Of a stretch of 64,000 nucleotides of DNA, positions 9,226 to 24,454 are shown in pieces. The stretch is taken from IMG/VR virus record IMGVR_UViG_3300025770_000870, positions 124,001 to 188,000 of that record. One strand, written 5' to 3'. The first letter of the stretch is position 1. Every line of letters starts with the position of its first letter. Both the position numbers and the translations under genes were made by a program. The notes under the pieces were generated by a model. It had not been told where the DNA came from, ran no database searches, and saw only the letters and a program-made list of their open reading frames with translations.

Positions 9226-9253
9226 AAAAGTCCTCTTAATGAGGATTTTTTTT
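9226..9253. terminator. Intrinsic terminator
   Basis: AAAAGTCCTC-ttaat-GAGGATTTTTTT between convergent genes. Confidence 0.7.
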
Positions 9254-9472
9254 ATGCTTTATAATTTCATCTATTTTAATATCTCTTAATATAGCTTTTT
9301 GATTTTCATTAAACCAACGTTTATAATCGTGATTATAAGCCATATGAACACCATCAATAATTGGACCAGCCTGTCCAAACATAAACTCAGTAAAGCTTTT
9401 ACGCCAATCATCAGGTATATCATCGAATGATACGGGCTCTGTATTTAAATACATCTCCATTAATTTAATCAT
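9236..9472 (-). CDS. Small hypothetical protein with C-terminal RDxKIDxI motif
   Basis: 78 aa ending ILRDIKIDEIIK; TATATTTG element upstream at 9477-9484. Confidence 0.7.
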   Translation of the reverse strand: MIKLMEMYLNTEPVSFDDIPDDWRKSFTEFMFGQAGPIIDGVHMAYNHDYKRWFNENQKAILRDIKIDEIIKHKKNPH

Positions 9473-9519
9473 GTAACAAATATAATAAACTTAACTCTAT
9501 TTTCCTAATATATCATGTA

Positions 9520-10716
9520 ATGGATAAGGGATATATAAAAAATATGATACAGAAGATTCTTGATAAAGAGTTTTCTCATAAACAGAAGCGTCGTCTTAAT
9601 GATTATCACGATAGACTTAACATGGCTTGTCCTTATTGTGGTGATAGTCACCGTCACAAACATTCTAAGAGAGGCAATCTCTATTTCAATAGATTATTCT
9701 ATATTTGCTTCAACTGTGATAAGAAGACTACCTTAGACAAGATGTGTAGGGATTTCAATGAGCAAATTGATCCAGGTAAGAAATTAGAAATGATTGAGCA
9801 CTTAGATAGTGTCATGACTTATAATGATTACGAAAATGAGTTTGTAGATGCTCAATTTGATAATCTAATTGATATGGAAGATCTTGAAGCAGCTTTCGCT
9901 TCTGATATAACTCCCATAAATGACTTCCAACCTATTAAGGTTAATGGTGGTATTTATAAGTACCTTATTGGTAGAGGAATAGGTCCCGAATTACATAAAA
10001 ATATTTATCAAGCAAAGTATCACAAAAACGAAAACGAAAGTGAGTGGATAATAGCTATGTTAAATAGAAGAGGTGATAAGATAATTGGAATGCAAGTCAG
10101 AAACCTTAAAGGTGGTAGACGAAGAATGTTCAAGATATACAATTATGAGAATCTATTAGAGTGGGTTAATCATGGTAAAGAAGAGCCTCTTAATATAGAT
10201 ATGGGTGAGATGGTTATTTATAATAAATTATCATACTATTTTAATATATTGAATGTTAACTTCGAAAAAAGAATAACCGTATTTGAGGGTTATTTAGATT
10301 CTTTATTCTATCCAAATTCAATAGGTTTGGTTGGTGTAAATACTGATTATAGATTTTTGGAGAATAATGGATTTGATATACAATATTTCTTTGATAATGA
10401 TGAAGCTGGTTTTAATAAGTCAGAAGAAAAAATGAATGATGGGTTTTCTGTCTTCTTGTGGAGAAAATTATTAAACGATATAGTTGATAAAAAGAATTCG
10501 ACAGATCCATATAAGCTATTCCATAGAATAGTTAAGGTCAAAGATATAAATAAATTGGCTGAGTTAGTACCAAATCCCTATAAGGCTCTTAAATTACCTG
10601 ATTATTTTAGCACAGATGTTCTTGATGTTAAATGGATACCTAAAATGAATAAAGGTAAGTGGGTAGAAAGAGAAACTGATTATAACAAGAAATTTGATAA
10701 TTTTAATAGATTATGA
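9520..10716 (+). CDS. DNA primase (T4 gp61-like)
   Basis: Zn-binding CPYCGDS...CFNC; TOPRIM VFEGYLDSL and FFDNDEAG. Confidence 0.88.
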   Translation: MDKGYIKNMIQKILDKEFSHKQKRRLNDYHDRLNMACPYCGDSHRHKHSKRGNLYFNRLFYICFNCDKKTTLDKMCRDFNEQIDPGKKLEMIEHLDSVMTYNDYENEFVDAQFDNLIDMEDLEAAFASDITPINDFQPIKVNGGIYKYLIGRGIGPELHKNIYQAKYHKNENESEWIIAMLNRRGDKIIGMQVRNLKGGRRRMFKIYNYENLLEWVNHGKEEPLNIDMGEMVIYNKLSYYFNILNVNFEKRITVFEGYLDSLFYPNSIGLVGVNTDYRFLENNGFDIQYFFDNDEAGFNKSEEKMNDGFSVFLWRKLLNDIVDKKNSTDPYKLFHRIVKVKDINKLAELVPNPYKALKLPDYFSTDVLDVKWIPKMNKGKWVERETDYNKKFDNFNRL

Positions 10717-10760
10717 ATTGGCATGGTGTGTGTTAATACAGGTAGTTGAGTTATTTATAT

Positions 10761-11069
10761 ATGATAAAAGATGAATTGATACAAATAAAAATATCCAATA
10801 AAACACTCTCATATTATTTGAATATTAAAGAGAGGTATCATCAACATTAATACAAGATGGATCTGGTATTTTAATAACAGGAATATGTGATTTTTGTGGG
10901 AATGAAAAGTTAATAAGTAAGAAAAAATATAACACACAAACCAAGTTTTCTAAGTTGGGATTCTCCTGTTCCAAACCAAACAGAACATTCTATAATGAAC
11001 GAAAGGGGTTATTATCGGATATTTGATTGTGGGTCTAAAAAGTGGATTAGGAAATTTAAATATCTTTAG
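10761..11069 (+). pseudogene. Fragmented homing-endonuclease-like gene
   Basis: Three out-of-frame pieces: MIKDELIQIKISNKTLSYYL, ITGICDFCGNEK...FSCSK and RGYYRIFDCGSKKW, resembling N- and C-terminal motifs of phage free-standing endonucleases. Confidence 0.6.
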
Positions 11070-11539
11070 ATAATTATATTACCTTTATTTATATACTTTT
11101 TATTTTTAGTAAAAAGAAATGACTTAAATTCTTTATTTCCTCTTTCTGCATTACAATCTTTACAACAAACAACTAGATTTACTTGACAATTATTACCACC
11201 TTCTGATATGGGTACTATATGATCCGCCGTAGCGTTTTCATAACTTAACTTTTCTTCACAATATAAACAAAGGCTACCTTTGTTTTTATTTATGAAATCT
11301 TTAGCGAATCCGCTAGTTCTTCTTTTAACATTTTTACCGCTATATTTTAGTCCGACCACAACAAAGTCTTTCATATATTTGAATTTTTTCCTATATATCT
11401 CACAAGATTTATAGTTCTTATTTACAATGACTACCAACTTTATTAAAAATTTCCATCTGTTGTATGTTTTCTTTTCTACTGAGAGAAAATGTGGGTGTTC
11501 CGATTTTACTAGGAATTTTATTACTTTTATTACTTTCAT
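11066..11539 (-). CDS. HNH endonuclease
   Basis: CLYC...TADHIVPISEGG.N...NLVVCCKDCN. Confidence 0.88.
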   Translation of the reverse strand: MKVIKVIKFLVKSEHPHFLSVEKKTYNRWKFLIKLVVIVNKNYKSCEIYRKKFKYMKDFVVVGLKYSGKNVKRRTSGFAKDFINKNKGSLCLYCEEKLSYENATADHIVPISEGGNNCQVNLVVCCKDCNAERGNKEFKSFLFTKNKKYINKGNIII

Positions 11540-11610
11540 ATTTTATCAATTTATATATTGAATTTTCTCATTTTCCTCGTTTAATATATACCTAAAATAA
11601 AATAACCACT

Positions 11611-11922
11611 ATGCGTAAATTTAAATTACCAAAAACTTTCTTTGGATGGTCTAACATTAAATGGGCTATTAAAGAGCTTACAAATGTTTATTCAACAAAC
11701 AAATCTTTCTTTTCTAAGAAAAGACTAGAATCTGGAATGGCTTTTTTAGTTGGTCAATTCGGGATGGTGTATTTCATGATACAAAATCATTCTACAATGA
11801 CTGCATCTGACTTAGCTATCTGGGCTGGGATAGAGTTTGCTATATCTGGGTATATGGTTACTCAAATACAGAAAGAAAAGAAAAAGGGTGATCCGGAAGG
11901 AAGTCACGAAGAACAAGTTTAA
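11611..11922 (+). CDS. Small membrane protein, holin-like
   Basis: Two hydrophobic segments and a charged C-terminal tail; TTAATATATA at 11581-11590. Confidence 0.5.
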   Translation: MRKFKLPKTFFGWSNIKWAIKELTNVYSTNKSFFSKKRLESGMAFLVGQFGMVYFMIQNHSTMTASDLAIWAGIEFAISGYMVTQIQKEKKKGDPEGSHEEQV

Positions 11923-11926
11923 AAAC

Positions 11927-11958
11927 AAAAAAGACCATCAATTTGATGGTCTTTTTTT
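11927..11958. terminator. Bidirectional intrinsic terminator
   Basis: AAAAAAGACCATCA-att-TGATGGTCTTTTTTT. Confidence 0.85.
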
Positions 11959-11974
11959 GTATCTATTATTTTAA

Positions 11975-12472
11975 TTACTTAAATTTTCTAGTATTCTTAT
12001 AACTTTTAGATTCACCTACTTTCATAGCATATCTTTCATCCTCATCCATTTCATCAAATTCTTTATCAGCTAATTTGTTTGATTCACCTTCTATAAAAGT
12101 AACAACTTCATCCGCCGTTTTGAATTTTTTATTACCAACGTGAAACATCTCTGTTTCTGATGGGAAAATTATCTTTTGTCCATTATATTCTACTTTACCA
12201 TTAGTAACCTCTGATCCTAATTTATCAGCAACTTCTTGTAGTTTATTTGCATAAACATCTCCACCTTCTTCTTCCATTTCTTCTTCCATTTCTTCAGATT
12301 CTAAATCTTCAATGGGAGCTTCTTTAACGTCAGATTCTAAATCTTTGAATTCATGTTCTAAGTCACGAATAGCTAATTCATGTTCTTGTTGGTTTGTATC
12401 AAACTCTTCTTCTGATTCAAACTCTTCGTTTACTCTTTCGTTAACAAATTGATTATATTTTTTAATCATCAC
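11975..12472 (-). CDS. Acidic protein with CTS-like N-terminus
   Basis: MMIKKYNQFVNE; Glu-rich; TTAATATATA at 12498-12507 on the minus strand. Confidence 0.75.
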   Translation of the reverse strand: MMIKKYNQFVNERVNEEFESEEEFDTNQQEHELAIRDLEHEFKDLESDVKEAPIEDLESEEMEEEMEEEGGDVYANKLQEVADKLGSEVTNGKVEYNGQKIIFPSETEMFHVGNKKFKTADEVVTFIEGESNKLADKEFDEMDEDERYAMKVGESKSYKNTRKFK

Positions 12473-12509
12473 TATTACTTATTTTTTGTTGTGTTTATAT
12501 ATATTAAAA

Positions 12510-13019
12510 TTAATTATCAGAATTTTTCAATTCACTTATAACATAATCAACAAAACTATCTAACTCATATTCTAATCCATTACAAAATTCGAATATGTCA
12601 TAATTATCTTGATTCTTTCTCTTTTTTATTGAGAAAAAATCAGGTGATGTTGTTCCATTACTAAATAAAACTATTTTTCCCTCTAACCTACCTTCTATTT
12701 TCTTCTTACTAGGAAATTCTAAATCAGGAACATACATTGTCCCAATATAGTGTATTTCATCACCATAATCTTCTATTTCTTCTAATTCAAATTTGAAATA
12801 TCCATAATCATCTTCGAAAACTCTTTCACTTTCTTCTTTCACTATCTCCTTATGAACTTCTTCTTCACCACCAGAAGCGTGAGCGTCCAAAAAATCTTTC
12901 TCCAGCTTGGTTATAGAAGGCATACCATATTTAGATATTTTATCTAAAATATCATCTACCCTTTCTTTGGTAGTATAACCTTCATATCTCATTAAGTGTT
13001 TCATATTGTTATTAAACAT
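12510..13019 (-). CDS. Hypothetical protein with CTS-like start and DUF6576-like motif
   Basis: MKHLMRYE (likely start 13004) followed by VDDILDKISKYGMPSITKLEKDFL. Confidence 0.7.
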   Translation of the reverse strand: MFNNNMKHLMRYEGYTTKERVDDILDKISKYGMPSITKLEKDFLDAHASGGEEEVHKEIVKEESERVFEDDYGYFKFELEEIEDYGDEIHYIGTMYVPDLEFPSKKKIEGRLEGKIVLFSNGTTSPDFFSIKKRKNQDNYDIFEFCNGLEYELDSFVDYVISELKNSDN

Positions 13020-13054
13020 TAAGGTATATATTTCATATTGAATTCCCTTTTTTA

Positions 13055-13447
13055 TCAGTAAAACTTATGTGTTGGTGTTTTACCTAACCCACTATCAACA
13101 AGGTTTCTGTTGTGGTTACCAACTAACCAAGGTTTTCCTATCTTTTTATGTATATTTTCCTTTATTGCTTTATATACTATTTCTAAATCCCCGTCTGTCT
13201 GATATATACAAATATAATTGTTGTTTACAATATCGATATCAAAATCAATAACTTCTTCATCTGATAGTATATTATCTATCTTAGACCCTCTATCGTACTT
13301 TTTAACCTCACTTACCCAATTCTCAACGAAGTAGAATATAAATCCACCAGATCCGTCCTTAGGATGCTCTTGAGCCATTTTTAGGTCTATACCATCATAG
13401 TATTTAACATTAATATCGTCTATTTTTTCCTCAGAAATTAATATCAT
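13055..13447 (-). CDS. Hypothetical protein with internal RxxKIDxIL motif
   Basis: 130 aa containing KYDRGSKIDNIL; start overlaps the end of the upstream gene. Confidence 0.7.
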   Translation of the reverse strand: MILISEEKIDDINVKYYDGIDLKMAQEHPKDGSGGFIFYFVENWVSEVKKYDRGSKIDNILSDEEVIDFDIDIVNNNYICIYQTDGDLEIVYKAIKENIHKKIGKPWLVGNHNRNLVDSGLGKTPTHKFY

Positions 13448-13664
13448 CGAATATATCGTCTATTTTTTTATCCCTTGTTTCGGATTTATGTAATCCTATT
13501 ATATTTTTATGGAAAAGTTCATCGGTTTCAAATTTTAGTTTGAAACTATCAAATGATGATCGTGACATTCTCAATAAAGAATACTCACCTCTTGATATTT
13601 TAGACTCTAAAATCCTGGTATCCAAGTAAGTTATATATTCTAGGTATAATTCCTCGTTTTTCAT
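13431..13664 (-). CDS. Small hypothetical protein with C-terminal RDKKIDDI motif
   Basis: 77 aa ending SETRDKKIDDIFDDINF. Confidence 0.7.
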   Translation of the reverse strand: MKNEELYLEYITYLDTRILESKISRGEYSLLRMSRSSFDSFKLKFETDELFHKNIIGLHKSETRDKKIDDIFDDINF

Positions 13665-13696
13665 AAATTATATATCTATATTTAATATATACCCAT

Positions 13697-14455
13697 ATGC
13701 TAAATTATAAAGAGTATTTAAAGGAGGCCCAAGATAATCAAGTCGTTGTGTTGGATGATGGACAAGGTGGTAATATGTTTAAGACTGTTAAAAATGGTAG
13801 TAAGAACTCAATTACTTATCTTAATGCTGTTATAAAAAGGTTTATCGAAAGTGTTTATGGATCATCTGGGTTTGTTTATGGTAAACATACTGATATATTT
13901 ATCGATAATAAGATAATTAATGGTGAGTATATATCAAAGATGGTTAATAATTACACCATTTTTAAAAATGTGATAAGAATTAATAATATTAAAGAGGAAG
14001 AATCTTTTTATAATTTTATGTTATCTAATCTGAATAATATTTATTCACCAAATGGTAAATTCTTTTTAGAACAATCATTACCTATTTTAATAAACACAAC
14101 TAGAAGGGGAAATGTACTTGAAAAAATGGCTAAGGAATCCTTTTTAAAGTATTCTAAAGAAAAAGATATCGAGATTACTATACAAAACCCTTCTGTTGAT
14201 GAAGATATAAACGGTGTTGATTTCAAATTCTTATCCAATGGTAGAAGTTTTACTGTTCAAGTAAAGCCATTTACTGATTATAAGTATATTGGTGATAAAA
14301 TTTTCATAAAGACAGAAGGATCTTTATCATTGAATACAAACTACTTGATACTATGTGATGGTAAGAATTGTATTAAATTAAGAAATACACCCTCTAATCC
14401 AGTTAAAATAAAAGGTAATACTTTTATTTCAAGTAAATCTAATCTACTTATTTAA
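13697..14455 (+). CDS. PD-(D/E)xK-like nuclease-fold protein with CTS-like N-terminus
   Basis: EDINGVDFKF...FTVQVKP pattern; N-terminus MLNYKEYLKE; TTAATATATA at 13682-13691. Confidence 0.55.
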   Translation: MLNYKEYLKEAQDNQVVVLDDGQGGNMFKTVKNGSKNSITYLNAVIKRFIESVYGSSGFVYGKHTDIFIDNKIINGEYISKMVNNYTIFKNVIRINNIKEEESFYNFMLSNLNNIYSPNGKFFLEQSLPILINTTRRGNVLEKMAKESFLKYSKEKDIEITIQNPSVDEDINGVDFKFLSNGRSFTVQVKPFTDYKYIGDKIFIKTEGSLSLNTNYLILCDGKNCIKLRNTPSNPVKIKGNTFISSKSNLLI

Positions 14456-15770
14456 ATCCACCGAATATATCCATTACCACACTCAATCTTCTTGTTATTT
14501 CTGGCATACCTAATGGTTCAATAATAGAATTAATTGGTGATAGTATTGATTTCTCAAATTGTATATCATAATCTATCTCAGGAGCAAATTCAATCGGGTA
14601 AGACCCTCTAGCATAAGCAAATGTGGAATTAACTGATTTATCTTTACAGATATAATATTTAATCTTTGTACCAGATTTCATAAATTCATACTTATCTTGT
14701 AATTTCTTATCATTGTTCAATAAGTAATTATGATAAGCGGCCGCTTTAACAGCAAAGTGAGCTCCACTTATAAATTGTAATGGTAATGTTTTATCATTTA
14801 AAACTTTCTCATCATATTTATTACAAGATGATTGCATTGCGATATCATCAACATCAGCCAATTCAAATTCCTTTCTAAGACCTTTTACCAATTTAAGTAA
14901 ATCCTTTATATTGAATGTATCGGGATTCTCAAATAAATACTCTACTATCCCAACAATCTTATCACGAGCAAAGGCTGGTGTGGATGACCTAACAAGTTCA
15001 ACTCCTTTAGGATAAATATATTTCAATCTATCATATGGAATACCATCCTCATATAAAATATGTTGTATGTATTTTTTCTTAGCAATATTTATAATTGATT
15101 CTGATATTCTTTCAAGTTCAAAATCTTCTTTGTTTTCAACACCATATGATTCTGCGTGTTTATCTAAACAATCTTTGAAGTAACCCTCATATTTTATTTG
15201 GTCAACTCCTAATATAAAATCAACCTCAGTAGACCAGTTCCAGATAATATCATTTGTTAAAACTCCATCATCTATCATCTTATTTAACTTCCTATCTTTC
15301 ACGAAGTTACCATCTATTAAAACTAACCCATAATCTTCTTTCAGAAGTTCTGTAAATTCCGTGATATCTTTTGACATACCCAAATAATTTGGATTATCTG
15401 TTTCTATCAAATCTCTTGATAGTATAATAAATTTCTTATCAATTGAAGATAGATATTCATCGTTAAATACTTGATCTCTCCAAGTACAATGGTCCATACA
15501 AGGTTTGAATGAAACAAAAATTGAATCGGTATCACCATAGATACTAACATCCTCTTTCGTATCAATTGGTGTGATATCTTTTATATTTAATTGTTTGTGT
15601 AGCTCAGTATCAAGATGCCATTGATTATACCAATAATCTTGGTTATCATCATCCATCTTTCTAGTCAATTCTCTACCCTCTGCTGTTATAGTACCTGCAA
15701 CGTGGTTGTTATAAAGTATGAAGTATGGTGTTGCGAAGGCTCCATAAGAACCATTCAATACAAGTTTTAG
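14448..15770 (-). CDS. Family B DNA polymerase, C-terminal portion (second half of motif B, motif C and thumb); no usable start codon upstream of the invariant Lys
   Basis: LKLVLNGSYG (frame open up to an in-frame TGA at 15773-15771), GTITAEGR, YGDTDS, AKKKY, KGVELVRSS, YDIQFEK. Confidence 0.93.
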   Translation of the reverse strand, partial: LKLVLNGSYGAFATPYFILYNNHVAGTITAEGRELTRKMDDDNQDYWYNQWHLDTELHKQLNIKDITPIDTKEDVSIYGDTDSIFVSFKPCMDHCTWRDQVFNDEYLSSIDKKFIILSRDLIETDNPNYLGMSKDITEFTELLKEDYGLVLIDGNFVKDRKLNKMIDDGVLTNDIIWNWSTEVDFILGVDQIKYEGYFKDCLDKHAESYGVENKEDFELERISESIINIAKKKYIQHILYEDGIPYDRLKYIYPKGVELVRSSTPAFARDKIVGIVEYLFENPDTFNIKDLLKLVKGLRKEFELADVDDIAMQSSCNKYDEKVLNDKTLPLQFISGAHFAVKAAAYHNYLLNNDKKLQDKYEFMKSGTKIKYYICKDKSVNSTFAYARGSYPIEFAPEIDYDIQFEKSILSPINSIIEPLGMPEITRRLSVVMDIFGGFK

Positions 15771-15807
15771 TCATTTACCCCCACTTAAAATAAAGCGGGG
15801 GTGATTA
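15768..15807 (-). other. 40-nt coding gap in polymerase motif B, a candidate ribosomal bypass element
   Basis: mRNA reads CUU|UAA UC ACCCCCGCUU UAUUUU AAGUGGGGGU AAA UGA CUA|AAA; 10-bp hairpin at 15777-15802; removing 40 nt restores QLALKLVLNGSYG. Confidence 0.8.
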
Positions 15808-15866
15808 AAGAGCGAGTTGAAGGGCATTGTAGTAATCTACTTCCTTTTTCAACTCGCTCGCTTTAA
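15805..15866 (-). other. Long RNA hairpin overlapping the putative take-off and stop codons
   Basis: UUAAAG-CG-AGCGAGUUGAA pairs with UUCAACUCGCU-CUUUAA (6 bp + 11 bp), plus an inner GUAG/CUAC stem. Confidence 0.8.
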
Positions 15867-15909: not shown

Positions 15910-15974
15910 ATTTAATAAATTTGTTATAAAGGGTACTTATACATTTTGATATATAAATAAACCTCTTAAAGTAT

Positions 15975-16433: not shown

Positions 16434-16495
16434 TATTTGATTAATCAGATATATTATATTTTAAATTTAATATATAATAAAAATAACAGTATCAA

Positions 16496-16904: not shown

Positions 16905-17807
16905 TTAATAGATAATTGGTCCATCAAACCCCAAACGAACATTTTGACCATCAAACACAATTGTTTCCGTTATCTCAGAAGGCTTAAATGTATTTTTGTG
17001 ATAAACTTTCATTGGTCTTCTAAAGTCTTCTTCTGGTGGAGTATAGACATAATTAAAACACTCACATCCACCACCCGTTCTTTTCCAAGACTTGGTTAAA
17101 AAAAAGTTATCACCTATTAATTCCTTTATGTGAAAATAAATATAATTCTCTTTTGAGTATTCATTGATAGGCATTAAAGATACTAAACCAATATCATTTA
17201 TCTCAACAGAGTTTGCCCATTCTAAATATTTAAATACTTCTTCTGGTGTATCTATATAATTCTTTATTAAGTTACATCTGAATTGTACTTGGTGTGGATG
17301 TGTTTGTAAATGGCTTATAGCCTTTATCTCTTCTGATGTAGGAGTTTTGCATTTGAATATCTCATCATTAATCTTATCATCATAGTGGTGACGACTAAGT
17401 TGTATATAATCATATCTTTTAGCAATAGGGTCGTTAAATAACTTCTCCCATCTAAATCCGTCTGTATTCAGTGATAATTCACAATCAGGTGCATATTCCA
17501 CACCAACATTGGACATTTCCAGAAAATTATCCCAATATAAAGTTGGTTCTCCACCAGAAATGGCTATTTTTCTAATCTTAATTCTATCTGATATATGTTG
17601 TAAGACTTCTTTATATTTTTTACCGTTCCATTTGGATGCGTCTGAGTGATATGTACAGAATGAGCACTTAGCGTTACAGAATTTAGTTCTAACATAAAGA
17701 TTTATATAAGGTTCTTCAATGGCGTTTCCCTCCTCCTCTCCAAATAAGGCACAATTATGAGTTATTAGCTTAATTTCTTTCCCGAATAATTCGATTGATT
17801 CTAACAT
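16905..17807 (-). CDS. Radical SAM enzyme of unknown specificity
   Basis: CNAKCSFC (CxxxCxxC), SGGEPT, LNTDG, QLSRHHY. Confidence 0.88.
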   Translation of the reverse strand: MLESIELFGKEIKLITHNCALFGEEEGNAIEEPYINLYVRTKFCNAKCSFCTYHSDASKWNGKKYKEVLQHISDRIKIRKIAISGGEPTLYWDNFLEMSNVGVEYAPDCELSLNTDGFRWEKLFNDPIAKRYDYIQLSRHHYDDKINDEIFKCKTPTSEEIKAISHLQTHPHQVQFRCNLIKNYIDTPEEVFKYLEWANSVEINDIGLVSLMPINEYSKENYIYFHIKELIGDNFFLTKSWKRTGGGCECFNYVYTPPEEDFRRPMKVYHKNTFKPSEITETIVFDGQNVRLGFDGPIIY

Positions 17808-17817
17808 TATTTATTTA

Positions 17818-18078
17818 TTAACAAGATGATCTTGAATATGATGAATCATCGTTTCGAAATCTCGAAATTGATGATTTTGGTGTTGGTGTTACTTTTTTAT
17901 TAATTCGTGGCTCGATATCATTTTCGATACAAAACTTTATATAAACAGATCTTTTCAAATCGCCTGTGTTTATTAAATCTTCACAAGCATCATTAAATTT
18001 TGATTCAAGGTTAGTACCTTCATATCTACCTTTGTAGAATTGTAAAAGTTTTGCTAAAAGTTCTAATTGTTGGTCCAT
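17818..18078 (-). CDS. Hypothetical protein
   Basis: 86 aa ORF tightly packed between nadR and the radical SAM gene. Confidence 0.7.
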   Translation of the reverse strand: MDQQLELLAKLLQFYKGRYEGTNLESKFNDACEDLINTGDLKRSVYIKFCIENDIEPRINKKVTPTPKSSISRFRNDDSSYSRSSC

Positions 18079-18096
18079 TGTGAATTCTTATTTTAG

Positions 18097-19116
18097 TTAT
18101 ATATTAAATTGTGAATTTACAATTTCAATAGATTTGCTTAATCTATCTCTCCAATTACCACCCACTTCTATATAATTACAATTGTACTTTTCCAATTCTG
18201 ATTTAATAACATTATAATGTTCCATCCTTTCTTCTAAAAACTGTCGTGTTCCGTCTTGAACACCATCACAATCAGGTTTCAATAGTAAGTATAAATCATA
18301 ATTACTATTTTTATATACTTTATCTAGTAATATGTTTTCAATACTTTTATAACCATTTGGAAAATACATTTTTGAGAAGAGGTATGTTGTTATATCCTCT
18401 GTATCACAGAATAATAATTTATTGGATGTCTTTATTTTTTGATTTTCCAATTCTTGTCGACCAACAGATATTGGGATAAAGTCTTCTATTCCTATTTTAT
18501 TACCATTTCTTTCAAATACAGTTCTGCCATATTCCTCAACAAAATTTGTGTTATAGTATTTAGCTAAATTTTCACTCATTGTTGATTTCCCAACAGATTC
18601 CGGCCCCATAATAACAATTCTCTTAACGAAGTAGGGTTTTATTTCATCCGGTATAAATTCCCAACTATCAAAGGGGTTAGTTCTTACTTTAGTTCCTGAT
18701 ATAGGAAATTTCTTTCTTTCTTTATCAACTAGATAGTGTTTTATACCCAAATATTTAGCAAAATCATCACCGTAATTCTCAGAAGTGAATACACAATCTA
18801 ATTTACCAACAAATTTATAAACAAATGGAACCCAATAAGAATAAAATTCATCAAGTGATTTACATTCGTGTTCATATTGTGGCATCTCACTATCATCAAC
18901 AGAGTGTATTATGACATTTGGGTTACTTTCATATATTTCTCGTAAAGATTTTACTCTTAATTTACCAGGGATTGTTTGTGTAGGATTATGACAAGCTAAA
19001 ACATGAACAACTTCCGAATTTTCCAAAGCGGTGTCTATTAAATAAAGGTGCCCGGTGTGTAATCCGTAGAATTTACCCAATACTAAACTACTTTTGTACT
19101 TTTTATCCATTTCCAT
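18097..19116 (-). CDS. nadR: Bifunctional NadR-type NMN adenylyltransferase and ribosylnicotinamide kinase
   Basis: GKFYGLHTGH (HxGH), FTSENYG, Walker A GPESVGKST, EEYGR, CDT, YDLYLLLKPD...DGTR; no HTH domain. Confidence 0.92.
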   Translation of the reverse strand: MEMDKKYKSSLVLGKFYGLHTGHLYLIDTALENSEVVHVLACHNPTQTIPGKLRVKSLREIYESNPNVIIHSVDDSEMPQYEHECKSLDEFYSYWVPFVYKFVGKLDCVFTSENYGDDFAKYLGIKHYLVDKERKKFPISGTKVRTNPFDSWEFIPDEIKPYFVKRIVIMGPESVGKSTMSENLAKYYNTNFVEEYGRTVFERNGNKIGIEDFIPISVGRQELENQKIKTSNKLLFCDTEDITTYLFSKMYFPNGYKSIENILLDKVYKNSNYDLYLLLKPDCDGVQDGTRQFLEERMEHYNVIKSELEKYNCNYIEVGGNWRDRLSKSIEIVNSQFNI

Positions 19117-19631
19117 AATCCAATTGATGCTAATATTAAGAATAAACCATATACATATGATGATACGTCTAAGCCATTTGATGAGAATAATACTATTAAT
19201 AGAATGTCATTTATAATCCAAAGAATCCAAGCTTCTATTTTCTTCTTCACTAATAGGAATGTAGCCATAACACCCAATGTCATTACAGCAGAGTCTAGAA
19301 ATGGCATATTACCACCATATTCACTTGTTATACAAAACGTGGTCATGTATAGAATAATGGTGCTGGTTGTTAGATATCCTAATTGCTTTTTATTTAACCA
19401 ACTAATAGCCAATTCTTCTTTTGGTTTGCTCCAGTTTATCCAACCTAGTATAGATTGGACTAGAAATACACCTTGTAAAACTAAATCACCAAGTAAGTTA
19501 TGGTTGTAAAAGATAACAGAGTAAAAGATAACTCCTACGATACCAAATGGCCAACATAATATGTTATCTTTTACTGTTAGAATAACAGCTAGTAACGTGA
19601 ATAAAACAGCTACTGCCTCAATAATATCCAT
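19083..19631 (-). CDS. pnuC: PnuC-family nicotinamide riboside or thiamine transporter
   Basis: Multiple TM helices; CWPFGIVG, GWINW, FLDSAVM, KKKIEAWILWIIND. Confidence 0.92.
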   Translation of the reverse strand: MDIIEAVAVLFTLLAVILTVKDNILCWPFGIVGVIFYSVIFYNHNLLGDLVLQGVFLVQSILGWINWSKPKEELAISWLNKKQLGYLTTSTIILYMTTFCITSEYGGNMPFLDSAVMTLGVMATFLLVKKKIEAWILWIINDILLIVLFSSNGLDVSSYVYGLFLILASIGLWKWIKSTKVV

Positions 19632-21613
19632 TAAATCTTAAATTTAATTGTAGCGAAGAAGTTGAATGGTGGATTAACAAAGAAGTGTCTATCTGTACCA
19701 ACTGCGTATCCATTAGTGTAATAACTTTCATTAGTTATGTTATTTACTCTAATACTTAAACTGTGTTGTTTATAGAATTTATAATCAACTTGAGCATTTA
19801 ATACCACAAAATCTGGTGTTGTGAGTGTGTTCTCCATATCAATATAAGACTCTGAGTGGTACTTCACATCAAATCCAACTCTTATTCTATCTTTTGAATC
19901 TTTAATCACCACACCTTGGTTAATTATCAAATTAGGTGTGTATAATGGACTAAATTCTTTCCCATCATCATTAATTCTGTTATAAGAGTATGATGATGTA
20001 TTAACTAATAATAAGTTAATTTTCTTTTTACTAAATAAACTTAAAGTCATATCTAATTCAATACCACTTCTAAAAGAGTTTTCAACATTAGTCATTAACG
20101 GTAAACCATTTGAACCAATTGCTCCTAATAATGTTATTTCATTTTTGAAATCCATATAGTATAGATTACCTTGTAACTTAAAGTTATCTAATGTTATATT
20201 AGTACCTAATTCATAATCAACAACCGATTCTGGTTTAACATCTATGTAACTAATAGGATCATCTTCTCCCATAAAAATATCATTTCTTGTTGGTTCTCTT
20301 TGTGATTGACCAACAGAAGCATAGAAGTTATAGTGTTTACATTTCGTGAACATTATACCACCTTTTGGGTTGAAGAATGTCCATTCAAATGGTGCCATAT
20401 CCATAGTACCTTGATACTTGAAATCAACGTATCTAACTTGAGCATCTCCGAAAAGAGTAAACTTCTTTATATCATATCCGAATTTAACAAATGATGATAC
20501 TTCGTTTTTAAGTCCTTTATTAGAATATAGTTCATCTGTGTTTGCTAATACAGTCATAGCATGTCGTCTATCATACATATTACCACTAACACCAATATTC
20601 AATCTATATTTATTACCAGTTAAGTTATAGTTAGAGGTTAATCCATAGAAGTTAGAACCTAAATTGAAGTTAAGAACATCATCCCCTCCACCAAGTGGTA
20701 GTAAATCTAATCCCCAATCTCCATCTAATCTATTATAGAAAGCGGTAGTCGTTAAATTTGACTTGTTAAAAAAGTGTTTGTGTTTTAAGATAACCATACT
20801 TTGTGTAAAGTCGTCATTTTCTCTAGTAGTATTATAGTTAGTTCTTGGTTCTGATTTTATATCATCTTCTGAAACTGCGAACCAAGCCATTTCATTAGTT
20901 GTGTGTCCATTGAATGCTGTTATTTTAACAAAATCCTTTTCTCCATAATAACCACCACTTAAAAAGAATGATTGTCCTTCACCACCTGAGTTATATTTGT
21001 ATCCATCACTCGCGTAATTTGAATATCTAGTATAAAAGGCTGTTTTATTTTTTAGTAATCCTGTTGAGTTTTCAATACTAACTCTATAAGTATTAAATGA
21101 TCCATATCCAATTTGTCCTTCTGTTCCTTTCTTTAATCCCGTTGGTGATTCAAAATTAATAGAACCAGCATATGAGGAAACACCGTTTGTTGATGTACCA
21201 ACACCACGTTGTATCTGCATTGACCTAATTGAGTTTGTAAAATCTGGGTAATTTGAGAAATATACACCTTGGTCCTCTGGTTCATTAAGAGGAACCCCAT
21301 CGAGTGTCATATTAATTCTAGTTTGGTCAATACCTCTCAATCTAAAGTAAGTATATCCCATATTGTGACCGCCATCTGTTGATGATGTTACACTTGGTGT
21401 TGTGTTTAATAACAACGGTAATTCTTGTGTATGATACATAACATCTATATCATCTTTACTGATTGTTTTCTGAGTGACTGGTGTTTTAGATCCAGCTCTA
21501 ATTCCTTGTATAGTAACTTCTTCAATTTGCACCATTGATGTGTCAACCTTTAGAGTATCCTGTGAATACGATGTTGATGTTGCTAATAAAAATAAAAATA
21601 GTAATTTCTTCAT
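19631..21613 (-). CDS. TonB-dependent outer-membrane receptor (Bacteroidota vitamin-uptake type)
   Basis: Signal peptide; plug with GYTYFRLRGIDQTRIN...QIQRGVGTSTNG; beta-barrel ending in alternating aromatic residues; 1-nt overlap with pnuC. Confidence 0.92.
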   Translation of the reverse strand: MKKLLFLFLLATSTSYSQDTLKVDTSMVQIEEVTIQGIRAGSKTPVTQKTISKDDIDVMYHTQELPLLLNTTPSVTSSTDGGHNMGYTYFRLRGIDQTRINMTLDGVPLNEPEDQGVYFSNYPDFTNSIRSMQIQRGVGTSTNGVSSYAGSINFESPTGLKKGTEGQIGYGSFNTYRVSIENSTGLLKNKTAFYTRYSNYASDGYKYNSGGEGQSFFLSGGYYGEKDFVKITAFNGHTTNEMAWFAVSEDDIKSEPRTNYNTTRENDDFTQSMVILKHKHFFNKSNLTTTAFYNRLDGDWGLDLLPLGGGDDVLNFNLGSNFYGLTSNYNLTGNKYRLNIGVSGNMYDRRHAMTVLANTDELYSNKGLKNEVSSFVKFGYDIKKFTLFGDAQVRYVDFKYQGTMDMAPFEWTFFNPKGGIMFTKCKHYNFYASVGQSQREPTRNDIFMGEDDPISYIDVKPESVVDYELGTNITLDNFKLQGNLYYMDFKNEITLLGAIGSNGLPLMTNVENSFRSGIELDMTLSLFSKKKINLLLVNTSSYSYNRINDDGKEFSPLYTPNLIINQGVVIKDSKDRIRVGFDVKYHSESYIDMENTLTTPDFVVLNAQVDYKFYKQHSLSIRVNNITNESYYTNGYAVGTDRHFFVNPPFNFFATIKFKI

Positions 21614-21629
21614 ATTTTTTGTTATTGAT

Positions 21630-21989
21630 TTATATTGATTGATTTATTATTGATTCTCTGTTTTCTGATTTAAGATATTCGAAAAAGTCTTTTAGTAAAA
21701 TATTTTCTGTTCCATCATACTCATATTCACTACCACTTCCTATATTCCCATAATTTATATTTGAGTTTTTAAACTCATTAAATTTTTCTTCTAATTTCTT
21801 ACTCATTTCAGTGGATGTATGGATATCAATTGTATTGTCTCTTTCATCTAAGTAAAAAGTGAACAATTTGTTATCTAATCCAGTTCTTTTGTGGTGTACC
21901 GAGACGAATCTTTTACCAAGTACCTCAATATGGTCTGAGTTATCACATTTAAGTTCAATTCCGTAAAATGGTAAGTATAAATTTATCAT
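21630..21989 (-). CDS. Hypothetical protein
   Basis: 119 aa ending SENRESIINQSI, a variant of the RDxKI tag. Confidence 0.7.
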   Translation of the reverse strand: MINLYLPFYGIELKCDNSDHIEVLGKRFVSVHHKRTGLDNKLFTFYLDERDNTIDIHTSTEMSKKLEEKFNEFKNSNINYGNIGSGSEYEYDGTENILLKDFFEYLKSENRESIINQSI

Positions 21990-22009
21990 ATTAGATTAAA
22001 ATTATTTGA

Positions 22010-22798
22010 TTAAATATCATCCTCTTCAAAATCTTGTTCGAAGCTAAGCATCAAATTAGATTCTTCATCTTTAACTAACATAAAGGTTTCGAATATACTG
22101 AATGTGATTTTTTCTCTCTCAGCGTTTATGCAATTTAAAAACCTTTTATTAAAAATAAGGTTAGAACTTCTATCATCTTCTAAGTTATCGACTTCTAAAT
22201 CCCAAGCTGATTTTTCAGAGAAGTTAACAATACCTTTATCGATACCAATATTTATAATTCTCTCTGAGTTAATACTTGAAAGTTTTTTAATATCAGTGAA
22301 ATCATCTTTCGTAAGAGCGAATGACCATTTACTATTTTTTAGATTTAAGTTCTTAGCTAACATTTCTTTATTGATTTCTCTAGTTTCATTATTGTGTTCT
22401 CCACCAACCCAATTAATCTTAAATCGACCACAAGATACTTGGAAATATCTTACTTGATAAATGTCTCTATCATCGGCTGATGGTTTATAATTAAATTCTA
22501 TTGTTACTTTATCCGGATCCTTGATCATACCAAGGTTCTTAACAAATTTCTTGATATTAGGTATGACTAAATCTAATTGATAATCTAGGTCATCGTTTTT
22601 TATGAGAAATTCATCTGTTGGTATTAAATAGTTTTTGAAGGCGAGTAATATATTCTTACCTAAGATAGAATACATTAATACATCATCATTATCTATTTTC
22701 AACCTAACACTATCATCAATAGTTGATAAATCACTTAATTTAGAAACAAATGTATTAAATGTGTCTCCGTTTATTTTAAATTTTACTTTATTCGCCAT
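22010..22798 (-). CDS. Sliding clamp-like protein (T4 gp45-like)
   Basis: 262 aa; two-domain pattern with FALTKDDFTDIKKLSSI; context of clamp loader and PolB. Confidence 0.6.
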   Translation of the reverse strand: MANKVKFKINGDTFNTFVSKLSDLSTIDDSVRLKIDNDDVLMYSILGKNILLAFKNYLIPTDEFLIKNDDLDYQLDLVIPNIKKFVKNLGMIKDPDKVTIEFNYKPSADDRDIYQVRYFQVSCGRFKINWVGGEHNNETREINKEMLAKNLNLKNSKWSFALTKDDFTDIKKLSSINSERIINIGIDKGIVNFSEKSAWDLEVDNLEDDRSSNLIFNKRFLNCINAEREKITFSIFETFMLVKDEESNLMLSFEQDFEEDDI

Positions 22799-22868
22799 TT
22801 CGTAGAAATATTATTACTAAGTATATCATGTAAATCTTTTTTTGTTTAGTTATTTTAATATATATGTT

Positions 22869-23195
22869 ATGGTAAAAAAATGGAATCAATTTATTAGAGA
22901 ATTCATAGAGAACTCGGATAATGTTATCGATATTAAAATGCAAGAGATAAGAACACTTATAAATGGTGTTTCTGATGGCCAGAACATAGTATATGAATGG
23001 GAGAATAAAAATGATCATCAATTAATAGTTAATTTCACTAAAGATGATTTATCTATTAGATATGAATTTGACATCGATAATTTGATAGTTAAAAAAATAG
23101 TTGGTGATACTGTTGATTTCACCAATCAGGCAAAATCCATAAGTGGTGGGTTAATTAATATTGAAAAGGATATACATATGGTTTTAAGTATTTAA
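22869..23195 (+). CDS. Hypothetical protein with CTS-like N-terminus
   Basis: ATG at 22869 gives MVKKWNQFIREFIE, right after a TTTAATATAT motif; the ORF track starts at 22842. Confidence 0.7.
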   Translation: MVKKWNQFIREFIENSDNVIDIKMQEIRTLINGVSDGQNIVYEWENKNDHQLIVNFTKDDLSIRYEFDIDNLIVKKIVGDTVDFTNQAKSISGGLINIEKDIHMVLSI

Positions 23196-23576
23196 GATAG
23201 GTTTAACGTGTTCGTTAATTATTCTTTCAACTTCCTTTAACTTCTTTCTCGTAGTTTTAACATCTAATTGAATTCTCCAATTTCTAACAAGTACATCATC
23301 ATCATCTGGAATTTCTTCGATTATTATATCGAAGTCTTCATCTTCCTTTAAAATTTCAAAGAAATTCTCATCACTTTCAAAAGAAGTCTTAAATTCTTTC
23401 ATTGTCTTTTCATCAATCTGTTGATAAGCACCATAAGGATCTAGAACCTCATATGTACCATTTTCGTTTGGTTCAAATATATGACCTTTTTCATAAATGA
23501 CCTTTTCCTTTGAAAGGCCCATAAAATCAGTCTTTATACACCAATCTTCTTTTGATATAAATCTAGGATACTTCAT
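23184..23576 (-). CDS. Hypothetical protein
   Basis: 130 aa ORF with phage-typical codon usage. Confidence 0.7.
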   Translation of the reverse strand: MKYPRFISKEDWCIKTDFMGLSKEKVIYEKGHIFEPNENGTYEVLDPYGAYQQIDEKTMKEFKTSFESDENFFEILKEDEDFDIIIEEIPDDDDVLVRNWRIQLDVKTTRKKLKEVERIINEHVKPILNT

Positions 23577-23600
23577 TTTTAATTTGTTTTTTATAAAATA

Positions 23601-24098
23601 TTAACTACGACCTAAATAGTTCATTAATTCAATCATATTCTTTATTGAATATGAAAAGCTTTCAAGATTTCTTACGGTGTCTCTTAAAAATTCTATATAT
23701 GATTCTATTAATTCCATACATCTATCATTCTCGGCTAGGTGACCGTCTATTAAAATACCCTTTTCTCCTAAATTGGTTTTCATACCAAAACCCGTTGCAT
23801 AAAAAACAAATTTATCTTGTCTAAGTTTCTTTATCTTAGTCGTTTCTCTACTACGTTTATTTAAAAAGAAGTTAATTTGTTCGTTAATTTGTTGTCTGTG
23901 TGTGAGAGCGTTAGCTTGAGCATCAAGTAATGGTTTAGCATTTGAGGGAATACTTAAATCCAAAGAAAGTACTTGAAATAATGGTTCCACATTTTTATTC
24001 CAATCTGTTCTTTTGTCATTAAAGAAGTCTTCTAATTTATCATTAGTCTCCTTTGCTTTTTTGATTCTCTCTAATTCTTCTTGGTTATATGGGTTCAT
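23601..24098 (-). CDS. UvsY-like recombination mediator
   Basis: Helical 165 aa with a C-terminus IESYIEFLRDTVRNL..FSYSIKNMIELMNYLG resembling UvsY. Confidence 0.55.
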   Translation of the reverse strand: MNPYNQEELERIKKAKETNDKLEDFFNDKRTDWNKNVEPLFQVLSLDLSIPSNAKPLLDAQANALTHRQQINEQINFFLNKRSRETTKIKKLRQDKFVFYATGFGMKTNLGEKGILIDGHLAENDRCMELIESYIEFLRDTVRNLESFSYSIKNMIELMNYLGRS

Positions 24099-24175
24099 AC
24101 TTAAATATTTTTTTCATTTGTTAATCATACCTTTTATGTCTTTATCTATGTTTTGATTTAAATATTTTTCAAAAT

Positions 24176-24454
24176 TTATTTATTTATTTCATCCATAATC
24201 TTTGAGATTTTGAAATCTCTTATGATTTTAATTGTTGAATTATCGATACCCTCATATATATCATTTGATGAGTGACCATTATTATTGATAATATTTAATA
24301 CTGATATTAATGATTCTCCCATCTCATCTAGATGTTGATTGATAATATTCTTCTTATTAATATTATTATTTTTTATATAATCAGAAATTATAATTATATG
24401 TGATGTTAGGTAATCAAGGTATTCATTAATTTCTAACTCTGTTGGTTCTTGCAT
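24176..24454 (-). CDS. Small hypothetical protein with C-terminal RDFKI motif
   Basis: 92 aa ending KIIRDFKISKIMDE. Confidence 0.65.
   Translation of the reverse strand: MQEPTELEINEYLDYLTSHIIIISDYIKNNNINKKNIINQHLDEMGESLISVLNIINNNGHSSNDIYEGIDNSTIKIIRDFKISKIMDEINK

Follow-up and report, generated by a model that had tools for sequence, protein, structure and literature searches.

A 64,000-nt window of a huge bacteriophage genome (positions 124,001 to 188,000 of the 241,918-bp record IMGVR_UViG_3300025770_000870) carries small genes whose products share a short peptide close to the C terminus, in a region that also encodes replication proteins (primase, polymerase, clamp, and UvsY). The features considered here, in window coordinates, are as follows.

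7052 to 7723 (-), ClpP-like protease subunit (PF00574, E = 9e-66), one of two in the record; the second copy is at genome positions 99,158 to 99,697.
9236 to 9472 (-), carrier gene of 78 aa beside the primase-like gene; tag KAILRDIKIDEIIK, encoded at 9257 to 9298, with Arg 16 residues from the end.
13055 to 13447 (-), gene of 130 aa with an internal copy of the tag, KKYDRGSKIDNILS, at residues 49 to 62 (encoded at 13262 to 13303; YDRGSKIDNIL is at residue 53).
13431 to 13664 (-), carrier gene of 77 aa, a predicted four-helix protein immediately downstream of the DNA polymerase C-terminal half; tag KSETRDKKIDDIFD, encoded at 13446 to 13487, with Arg 14 residues from the end.
14448 to 15758 (-), C-terminal half of a family-B DNA polymerase (phrog_262, E = 8e-44), with the conserved tail EITRRLSVVMDIFGGFK encoded around 14451 to 14501.
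21630 to 21989 (-), gene of 119 aa downstream of the clamp gene, ending in KSENRESIINQSI; not a tag carrier (see below).
22010 to 22798 (-), predicted PCNA/gp45-like sliding clamp of 262 aa, the leading candidate partner for the tag.
24176 to 24454 (-), carrier gene of 92 aa upstream of the UvsY-like gene; tag IKIIRDFKISKIMD, encoded at 24191 to 24232, with Arg 14 residues from the end.

A first-pass annotation made from the sequence alone proposed a recurrent peptide, R(D/E)xKI(D/S)xI, in five small non-late proteins, citing ILRDIKIDEII (9236), ETRDKKIDDIF (13431), YDRGSKIDNIL (13055, internal), IIRDFKISKIM (24176), and the weaker ENRESIINQSI (21630). All five peptides are present in the open reading frames (ORFs) at these coordinates. 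To determine whether the peptide is more frequent than chance, as that annotation had asked, we scanned 367 ORFs of the whole record. The pattern R[DEG].KI[DS].I occurred 4 times, compared to 0.06 in residue shuffles, and a looser form occurred 10 times, compared to 0.65. Thirteen proteins carried the tag in their last 25 residues, against a mean of 0.074 (maximum of 2) in 1000 shuffles of those C termini, and the rate per residue was about 25 times higher at C termini than inside proteins. In 55 related loci, 50 carriers were found against 0.28 expected. The observation therefore held, and the tag is more widespread than first noted.

We next built a scoring matrix from 23 unrelated carrier families of other genomes only. 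This matrix recovered about 14 C-terminal carriers in the record, with at most 0.5 expected. The 9236 protein gave the top score (28.3), the 24176 protein scored 13.0 (0.12 expected), and the internal copy in the 13055 protein scored 19.9. In contrast, the 21630 protein scored -7.2, rank 194 of 367 C termini, which is background; its orthologue tails are NREQIINNLKTK and MRDEVLTEIIQ. Thus, four of the five peptides are true members and the fifth is not.

The full motif is longer than first proposed: K(-4), R0, D/E1, K3, I/L4, N/D/K/E5, I/L7, and L/I/F8, followed by 1 to 6 residues and the stop. Across 34 unrelated families, position 1 is D in 21, E in 7, N in 3, and G in 3; position 4 is I in 23 and L in 10; position 7 is I in 24 and L in 7; and position 8 is L in 24, I in 6, and F in 2. 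Lysine at -4, which the search pattern did not require, is present in 16 of 34 families. After position +8, 0 to 7 further residues (most often one) of variable identity were counted.

To examine how far the tag extends, we searched related genomes. A nucleotide pattern for the tag gave 52 hits in five related genomes, against 2 for a reversed-pattern control, and 26 of 31 hits examined lay in frame 9 to 15 codons before a stop. The same pattern gave 60 hits against 0 in the complete genome LR745206.1 (634 kb) and 48 against 2 in the complete genome LR756502.1. In LR745206.1, 77 of 969 ORFs carry the strict form and 124 the generic form, so that about one in ten proteins of this lineage ends in the tag. 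A K-for-D variant marks 65 to 102 ORFs of the distant LR756504.1. Position 1 is D/E/N in 80% of LR745206.1 carriers and K in 59 of 102 LR756504.1 carriers. The related huge phage LR756501.1, with only 6 generic hits in 1040 ORFs, lacks the tag and has a different recurrent peptide, DPYGEExW. We found no published description of the tag.

The carriers are mostly small (66 to 250 aa) and otherwise unrelated. BLAST on masked carriers gave 41 clusters, and four jackhmmer rounds on 90 tag-less bodies gave 79 clusters, with links only between orthologues. The bodies include an all-helical protein, a P-loop protein, a capsid-protein-like fragment, and a protein with a hydrophobic N-terminal segment that looks membrane-spanning by eye. 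Among 30 carriers scanned against Pfam and/or PHROGs, only one gave a weak hint of a DNA-related function (the P-loop protein, DnaC-like helicase loader); no carrier had a PHROG function, and none of the 10 largest LR745206.1 carriers had a Pfam domain above threshold. The tag avoids core genes: 1 of 137 core proteins carries it, compared to 76 of 832 noncore proteins.

Orthologues of the 9236 protein only 35 to 48% identical keep ERDIKI(D/N)xI, and the 13431 family was found in 27 related loci with the tag kept. The internal 13055 copy is likewise conserved in orthologues (RESKIDSIL, REAKINSLF, and others). Some orthologous bodies lack the tag, indicating gain and loss, and the 24176 protein has no homologue in LR745206.1. 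An AF2 model of the 13431 protein (mean pLDDT, 86.5) places the tag in the last helix, H49-75.

The first-pass annotation interpreted the peptide as a docking helix that targets diverse proteins to one partner, and this interpretation was partly supported. Its claims that the peptide is mostly C terminal, that the carriers are small and unrelated, and that none has the capsid targeting sequence (CTS)-like N terminus all held; for the last, 0 of 155 carriers had such an N terminus, compared to 89 of 2132 other ORFs (P = 0.004). Its description of the carriers as non-late is only tentative. In LR745206.1, carriers were enriched in units with a host-type TAnnTTTG word upstream (26 of 168 against 13 of 392) and depleted in AATATATA units and in the units that precede structural genes. 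However, this promoter classification is crude and was not reproduced for the window's own carriers, two of which have AATATATA-like words upstream.

We consider it likely that the peptide, placed 9 to 16 residues from the C terminus, is a short linear docking motif forming one face of a terminal amphipathic helix, gained repeatedly by unrelated, mostly small, lineage-specific accessory proteins of a huge-phage clade and tying them to one common partner. A single partner fits the lineage flavor at position 1, the retention of the tag by divergent orthologues, and its gain and loss on orthologous bodies. The analysis establishes the enrichment, the C-terminal position, the unrelatedness of the carriers, selection at the peptide level, conservation and lineage flavor, and the existence of the clamp; that the tag docks to a partner at all, and to which one, is inferred, as are clamp binding and degradation through the tag.

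Our most likely specific partner, proposed only tentatively, is the phage's own PCNA-like clamp. In this view, the tag is a diverged PIP-box or T4 LDFL-type peptide that docks in the hydrophobic pocket of the clamp and would tether the carriers to replicating phage DNA. The position of the window's carriers among replication genes fits this view. The clamp protein had no PHROG match and no PDB sequence match, and no match to Pfam PF02916 (gp45 N-terminal domain) was found anywhere in the genome; however, its AF2 model (mean pLDDT, 81.8) matched PCNA and T4 gp45 (6drt and 3u61) in Foldseek at E values of about 1e-9 to 1e-10. Complex prediction of the clamp with the 13431 protein scored 0.00, 0.67, and 0.59 in three runs (median, 0.59; best of 3 controls, 0.01), a result graded as weak support, without a reported interface. 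The mark was reached by 58 of 80 solved complexes and 2 of 110 mismatched pairs, but scores of 0.60 or under were seen in only 7 of those 80 solved complexes and in both mismatches that passed. The runs agreed in at least 0% of their contacts, and the partner's pLDDT was at least 67. Since PCNA-peptide complexes are common among solved structures, the score may also come from the model's memory.

In T4, the unrelated proteins gp43, gp55, and gp33 share one interchangeable clamp-binding epitope at the extreme C terminus (PMC2988020), and the tag has the same h-(D/N)-x-h-h core spacing as its LDFL motif (PMC9690074). It differs in being basic plus aliphatic (K, R, K, I, I/L, and L) rather than hydrophobic plus acidic and in sitting on about 100 proteins per genome rather than 3, a very large clientele for a clamp. 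A search for the gp33 family PF16805 gave no match at E ≤ 10. The tag also has the register of the PIP box (Qxx[I/L]xxFF), with position 1 polar, position 4 aliphatic, and positions 7 and 8 hydrophobic; both are often C terminal with a basic flank, and the PIP box serves many clients of one hub (PMC9690074), as the tag may. However, the Gln at position 1 and the aromatic pair at positions 7 and 8 of a canonical PIP box are absent.

The polymerase tail, the presumed clamp ligand, also argues against this partner, as does the finding of only one weak hint of a DNA-related function among the 30 carriers scanned. The tail is conserved in 58 related loci, but RRLSVVMDIFGGFK scores -10.6 on the tag matrix (rank 265 of 367) and shares only the skeleton R0/h4/h7/F8 with the tag, a loose skeleton found in 5 of 354 noncarrier C termini. 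Polymerase tails differ completely between lineages (RLSVVMDIFGGF; GMLFDADDY...DDLLD; KLTFTLSLF), while the tag stays similar in two of them. The last of these tails, from LR756504.1, is unlike that lineage's own tag.

An equally possible reading is that the tag docks to some other single hub, either a host protein (RNA polymerase, beta-clamp, SSB, ClpX, or a membrane or division protein) or another phage protein, and would serve host takeover by early accessory proteins. The evidence for a docking motif applies equally here, the carriers are lineage-specific proteins without detectable relatives or domains, the flavor at position 1 could follow a host as easily as a phage partner, and neither the clamp nor Clp is firmly supported. 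There is, however, no positive evidence for any particular alternative.

Less likely, the tag addresses proteins to a phage-encoded Clp machine (two ClpP paralogues plus a ClpC-like unfoldase that lacks the N-domain), acting as a C-terminal degron that would give early accessory proteins a short life or as a docking peptide of adaptors that would deliver bound host targets for degradation. The evidence is co-occurrence only. ClpP genes are present in all nine tag-bearing records examined (two in the present record [G000], two in LR745206.1, three each in LR756502.1 and LR756504.1, and one or two each in the related records G001 to G005), whereas LR756501.1 has none. A 701-aa ClpC-like protein with a VGF loop and a UVR-like middle region is present in LR745206.1, with homologues in LR756502.1, LR756504.1, and G005. 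The small, accessory nature of the carriers, their avoidance of CTS-like N termini, and the enrichment of host-type promoter words also fit this reading. The ssrA tag, the MuA C terminus, and the ClpX-binding tail of SspB are C-terminal peptides that address many unrelated proteins to one machine, and C-terminal placement is typical of Clp degrons. However, the co-occurrence rests on about three independent lineages, and 69 LR745206.1 proteins share the same phyletic pattern (a homologue in LR756504.1 but none in LR756501.1). Moreover, ssrA-type degrons need a defined free C terminus, while the residues after the tag vary in number and identity; the motif is also predicted to be helical and has conserved internal copies.

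The tag is not a T4 capsid targeting sequence. Both are short terminal peptides on diverse small phage proteins, the CTS sending its carriers to one destination, and CTS-like N termini (MIKKFNQF...) occur in this genome, but the CTS is N terminal and cleaved off, and the two tags are mutually exclusive here.

It is unlikely that the peptide is the last recognizable helix of one paralogous superfamily, a by-product of a DNA or RNA signal (promoter, terminator, translational-coupling region, or recombination site) near gene ends, or a reflection of A+T-rich composition, given the 79 body clusters, the variable codons, and the shuffled controls. Arg is encoded by AGA (7), CGT (4), and AGG (2) and Ile by ATT, ATC, and ATA; same-codon pairs number 238 against 205.6 expected; and substitutions are conservative at the protein level (I/L, D/E/N, and K/R). 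Downstream contexts vary, and tags also occur before convergent neighbors. Reversed sequences gave 0 hits and N termini 0 carriers in G000, and LR756501.1, which has few generic hits, is itself A+T rich. Some observations do fit such readings: some local paralogue arrays exist, for example six tandem genes in G005 that all end in RExKLNxLL(N/D)EY, many carriers overlap the start of the next gene, K codons in the tag are almost all AAA, and a 16-nt repeat duplicates tag-coding DNA across the 13431/13055 junction.

The window is bases 124,001 to 188,000 of a single 241,918-bp, 30% G+C viral record, which is related, among deposited phage genomes, only to uncultured huge phages of 634 to 735 kb. 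LR745206.1 is 79% identical in DNA over most of the region of interest, and the clamp protein encoded there is 79% identical in LR745206.1, 55% in LR756502.1, 28% in LR756501.1, and 24% in LR756504.1. Polymerase loci identical to that of the window lie on IMG/VR contigs of 154 and 483 kb, the 90% cluster of the clamp includes a contig of 551 kb, and the nearest complete relatives are 634 to 642 kb. The record (CheckV estimate, 89% complete) is therefore probably a fragment of a genome larger than 550 kb. The region of interest is a replication neighborhood (window coordinates), with a run of metabolic-looking genes, recognized by eye from the translations only, between the polymerase and the clamp:

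4901-6505, UvsW-like helicase, identified by homology across the huge phages and by its helicase motifs
7052-7723 (-), ClpP
9520-10716, primase-like gene
14448-15758 (-), C-terminal half of a family-B DNA polymerase
16905-21613 (-), metabolic-looking run: radical-SAM-like protein (16905-17807), NadR-like protein (18097-19116), PnuC-like protein (19083-19631), and TonB-dependent-receptor-like protein with a signal peptide (19631-21613)
22010-22798 (-), 262-aa protein with a predicted PCNA/gp45-like clamp fold
23601-24098, weak UvsY-like gene

The family-B DNA polymerase is split into two genes about 96 kb apart, at window 14448-15758(-) and genome 234401-235939(+), and the same split is seen in LR745206.1, LR756501.1, and LR756504.1. 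Some relatives extend the polymerase tail to an SSB-like ...DDFPW end.

To determine whether the recurrent peptide exceeds chance, we called 367 ORFs on the whole record. All five peptides reported in the first-pass annotation are present in the ORFs to which they had been assigned. The pattern proposed in that annotation occurs 4 times, against 0.06 in shuffled sequences, and a looser pattern occurs 10 times, against 0.65; 9 of 12 loose hits lie 10 to 16 residues from a C terminus. When C termini were shuffled, the test proposed in that annotation, 13 proteins carried the motif in their last 25 residues, compared to a mean of 0.074 (maximum of 2 in 1,000 shuffles). The rate per residue is about 25 times the internal rate, and there were no hits in reversed sequences or in N termini. 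A position matrix built only from 23 unrelated carrier families of other genomes recovered about 14 C-terminal carriers in this record, with at most 0.5 expected. On that matrix, the genes at 9236, 13431, and 24176 score 28.3, 25.1, and 13.0, and the internal copy in the 13055 gene scores 19.9. The tail of the 21630 gene, which had been listed as a weaker example, scores -7.2 (rank 194 of 367) and is not a member. Thus, the observation itself holds, with the exception of this one peptide.

To define the tag, we took one sequence from each of 34 mutually unrelated carrier families.

Residues at each position of the tag in 34 carrier families, numbered from the invariant Arg
Position -4: K in 16 of 34 (not required by the search pattern)
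Position 0: R
Position 1: D 21, E 7
Position 3: K 30, R 4
Position 4: I 23, L 10
Position 5: N 12, D 9, K 6, E 6
Position 7: I 24, L 7
Position 8: L 24, I 6, F 2

One to six further residues follow position 8, and in 11 families only one residue follows. By our own helical-wheel geometry, K-4, R0, K3, I4, I7, and L8 share one face. The AF2 model of the 13431 protein (mean pLDDT, 86.5) has four helices and places the tag at the end of the last helix (residues 49 to 75), where confidence falls to 63 to 72. A fold search with this model returned no match at an E value of ≤0.001.

We next asked whether the signal resides in the DNA or reflects paralogy. Arg is encoded by AGA (7), CGT (4), and AGG (2), and Ile is encoded by ATA, ATT, and ATC; identical-codon pairs number 238, against 205.6 expected from genome codon usage. 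Tags also occur before convergent, overlapping, and distant downstream genes, and substitutions are conservative at the protein level. An explanation by a DNA motif, promoter, or translational coupling was rejected on this codon evidence. At one site, window 13409-13472, tag-coding DNA is duplicated across the junction of the overlapping 13431 and 13055 genes; the two copies lie 40 nt apart and share an exact 16-nt core, and as a result the next gene starts MILISEEKIDDIN..., echoing ...RDKKIDDIF of the gene before it. Carriers share no BLAST similarity outside the tag. Ninety-four carriers with the tag masked fall into 41 clusters, and 90 tag-less bodies from this record and LR745206.1 fall into 79 clusters after four jackhmmer rounds, with links essentially all between orthologues. 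The carriers are therefore not full-length paralogues, and neither of the refuting conditions set in the first-pass annotation, no enrichment or full-length paralogy, holds. Regions following internal tags were also compared, and they share no recurrent domain beyond orthologues, which led us to reject a Rosetta-stone relationship. A local paralogue expansion of one carrier family was seen in the related genome G005 (the contig behind locus L056, 3.8 to 6.2 kb; loci L071, L076, and L081), where a tandem array of six paralogous small genes all end in (R/M)DNPKAE(I/L)xRL(N/Q)-RExKLNxLL(N/D)EY.

To examine the distribution of the tag, we searched 58 polymerase-centered loci from related IMG/VR contigs (polymerase 56 to 100% identical). 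These loci hold 91 motif hits, 67 of them within 20 residues of a C terminus. A nucleotide pattern for the tag was then run against related genomes, with the same pattern read backwards as the control.

Hits to a nucleotide pattern for the tag and to the reversed-pattern control
Five related genomes (G001 to G005): 52 hits, control 2
LR745206.1: 60 hits, control 0
LR756502.1: 48 hits, control 2
LR756501.1: 2 hits, control 1
LR756504.1: 2 hits, control 1

Among 31 hits examined in the five related genomes, 26 lie in frame 9 to 15 codons before a stop. A full ORF scan of LR745206.1 (969 ORFs) found 77 C-terminal carriers; nearly all are 66 to 246 aa, and they account for 67 of the 438 ORFs of 60 to 150 aa. 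A de novo search for words enriched at C termini recovered RD.KI in LR745206.1. In LR756504.1, the same search found a variant with Lys at position 1, R-K-x-(R/K)-I-(E/D/N)-x-L, in 65 small proteins (102 when position 1 was left free), 8 to 14 residues from the end and often in tandem gene arrays (for example, record 606076-609209 and 25825-28075).

Generic carriers per genome, with position 1 left free
LR745206.1: 124 of 969 ORFs; position 1 is D 59, E 24, N 16, K 10
LR756504.1: 102 of 951 ORFs; position 1 is K 59, D 1, E 4
LR756501.1: 6 of 1,040 ORFs; no preference at position 1
This record: 15 of 367 ORFs; position 1 is D 9, E 2, G 2

The tag is therefore old within the group, and the carriers of a lineage share that lineage's flavor. 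The sister huge phage LR756501.1 (735 kb), which lacks the RDxKI tag, carries a different recurrent peptide, (L/I)DPYGEExW(D/N/E), with 106 copies in 91 of 1,040 ORFs (for example, record 145582-145887, 500835-501278, and 44452-46983). About 39 copies lie exactly 9 to 11 residues from the C terminus, while others are internal, repeated, or placed just after MIKKFxxFE-type N termini; many are preceded by (K/R)R(V/I)(F/Y)(S/T). None occurs in this record or in LR745206.1, and a literature search found no paper that mentions this peptide in a phage context.

Orthologues of the 9236 protein are only 35 to 48% identical but keep ERDIKI(D/N)xI. Between this record and LR745206.1, 12 of 14 carriers with a homologue keep a tag, and one orthologue ends before the tag. 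Between LR745206.1 and LR756504.1, some orthologous bodies have the tag in one genome only, and one pair shows the lineage flavor (LRDSKIKKILDE against TRKRRIQRFLNK). The tag avoids conserved genes: 1 of 137 LR745206.1 proteins with homologues in both distant genomes carries it, compared to 76 of 832 others (P = 1e-4). N termini of the type M(I)KK(F/Y/W)NxF..E, designated a CTS-like tag in the first-pass annotation, recur in about 4% of ORFs of three genomes, including 18 ORFs of this record (for example, at the window gene starts 8152, 11975, 16496, 22842, and 25296), but were never found on a protein with the C-terminal tag (0 of 155 carriers against 89 of 2,132 other ORFs; P = 0.004).

The carriers had also been described as non-late. 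Two word classes are enriched upstream of genes in LR745206.1 genome-wide, and the locations noted in this record are upstream of 198213 and 200440. One, AATATATA ((T)TAATATATA(A/C)), is enriched 19-fold, precedes the capsid-region genes, and peaks 25 to 35 and 10 to 14 nt before the start codon; the other, TAnnTTTG, resembles the Bacteroidota housekeeping promoter. They may be late-type and host-type promoters, respectively. Carriers make up 26 of 168 genes in TAnnTTTG units but 13 of 392 in AATATATA units (P = 1.5e-6). This classification is crude, however, and it is not reproduced for carriers of the window, since the 13431 and 24176 genes have AATATATA-like words upstream. "Non-late" is therefore only a tendency, and any assignment of timing is tentative.

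A peptide with one conserved helical face, its terminal position, its presence on many unrelated bodies, its gain and loss on orthologous bodies, its retention in divergent orthologues, and a flavor shared by the carriers of a lineage together indicate a short linear docking motif recognized by one partner. We consider this likely, and to that extent the core of the earlier inference is upheld; as a whole, that interpretation is only partly supported, because the partner remains a matter of inference. What the analysis establishes solidly is the tag itself, a lineage-specific peptide on 8 to 13% of the proteins of a huge phage, while docking, binding to any particular partner, and degradation through the tag are inferred from sequence and predicted structure.

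The most likely single partner, although still a tentative one, is the phage's own predicted sliding clamp. The 262-aa protein at 22010-22798(-) has no PHROG match and no PDB sequence match (phmmer), and the genome holds no match to the gp45 family PF02916; searches for gp33 (PF16805) and gp32 (PF08804) likewise found nothing. The protein is conserved in more than 460 metagenomic proteins, all of them named hypothetical, and was recognized only by fold: its model (mean pLDDT, 81.8) is a two-domain clamp subunit that matches PCNA and T4 gp45 at E values of about 1e-9 to 1e-10, and by predicted fold it is clearly PCNA/gp45. Its C terminus, EQDFEEDDI, is conserved and acidic. T4 provides a precedent, as the unrelated proteins gp43, gp55, and gp33 share an interchangeable C-terminal clamp-binding epitope, the LDFL motif (PMC2988020; PMC9690074). 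In addition, the tag has the PIP register (positions 1, 4, and 7-8) and an h-(D/N)-x-h-h core like LDFL(F/Y/L). Complex prediction of the clamp with the 13431 protein scored 0.00, 0.67, and 0.59 in three runs (median, 0.59; best of three controls, 0.01), which is classed as weak support. The mark was reached by 58 of 80 solved complexes and 2 of 110 mismatched pairs; scores of 0.60 or under were seen in only 7 of those 80 solved complexes and in both mismatches that passed. The runs agree in at least 0% of their contacts, the pLDDT of the partner is at least 67, and no interface was given; moreover, PCNA-peptide complexes are common among solved structures, and so the pass may come from the model's memory.

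Several findings argue against the clamp. The clade-wide polymerase tail, (T)KRLSVVMDIF(G/S)GF, shares only R0/h4/h7/F8 with the tag and scores -10.6 on the matrix, and that loose skeleton occurs in 5 of 354 non-carrier C termini; the tail was thus rejected as a member of the tag family. Polymerase tails change completely between lineages (GMLFDADDY...DDLLD in LR756501.1 and KLTFTLSLF in LR756504.1), while the tag does not follow them. More than 100 clients per genome is also a great many for a clamp. Scans of 30 carriers (10 against both Pfam and PHROGs, 10 against PHROGs only, and 10 against Pfam only) returned nothing useful. The hits were weak: a match to part of the T4 major capsid protein gp23 (Pfam Gp23) for genome 206626-207378, a DnaC-like/thymidine-kinase P-loop for 231157-231633, which was the only hint of this kind, and a subthreshold PolyA_pol hit. 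None of the ten largest LR745206.1 carriers has a Pfam domain above threshold. Finally, homologues of gp33 and gp55 could not be found for comparison.

Some other hub is about as possible as the clamp. A phyletic search for the hub was not discriminating, as 69 LR745206.1 proteins have homologues in LR756504.1 but not in LR756501.1, too many to single out one.

A less likely candidate is the phage's own Clp system. The record encodes two ClpP paralogues, at window 7052-7723(-) and at genome 99,158-99,697(-), and LR745206.1 also encodes a 701-aa ClpC-like unfoldase (423224-425329, +) that lacks the usual N-domain but keeps a UVR-like middle region and a VGF loop. ClpP is present in every tag-bearing record examined and absent from LR756501.1, which lacks the tag. 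This correlation is suggestive, but it rests on about three independent lineages, and the 69 proteins mentioned above share the same phyletic pattern. The variable residues after the motif and the conserved internal copies do not look like ssrA-type degrons, and we regard the Clp reading as doubtful.

A broader version of this idea is speculative and, on present evidence, improbable, although it is not excluded. In this view, huge phages of this group would run proteome-wide addressing systems that differ between lineages, in which one peptide carried by about 10% of all proteins (RDxKI..IL; RKxRI..L in LR756504.1; perhaps DPYGEExW in LR756501.1) marks the fast-evolving early accessory proteins of the phage for a phage-encoded machine. 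In its most interesting form, that machine would be the N-domain-less ClpC with ClpP1/ClpP2, and the tag would either time the removal of early proteins or turn dozens of diverse small proteins into adaptors that feed host targets to a viral protease, a bacterial-virus counterpart of the F-box/PRANC logic of poxviruses. Explanations that do not involve docking are unlikely, given the codon and clustering evidence.

Full-text searches for the tag peptides returned no relevant paper. If the clamp reading holds, the tag would be a strongly expanded and diverged variant of the T4 clamp epitope; if the Clp or another reading holds, it would be a new kind of proteome-wide addressing system in a virus of bacteria. 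Most genes of huge phages are small and have no detectable relatives or domains, leaving no handle on their function, and a single peptide shared by 8 to 13% of the proteome gives such a handle. Identification of the partner could place about 100 unknown proteins per genome in one pathway, whether that is replication-coupled tethering, timed proteolysis, or host takeover. The tag would also be the largest known clientele for a linear motif in any phage, and the lineage variants (D/E against K at position 1 and a wholly different DPYGEExW peptide in a sister lineage) form a natural experiment in how a motif and its hub evolve together. In practice, the tag is also a sequence marker for this clade and for its accessory gene class.

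Two of the carriers, at genome 206626-207378(+) and 110653-111060(+), are homologous to each other, and one of them is also homologous to part of the 576-aa gp23-like capsid protein at 200440-202170 (BLAST E value of 3e-13; weak Pfam Gp23 hit). They are capsid-protein fragments with the putative docking tag.
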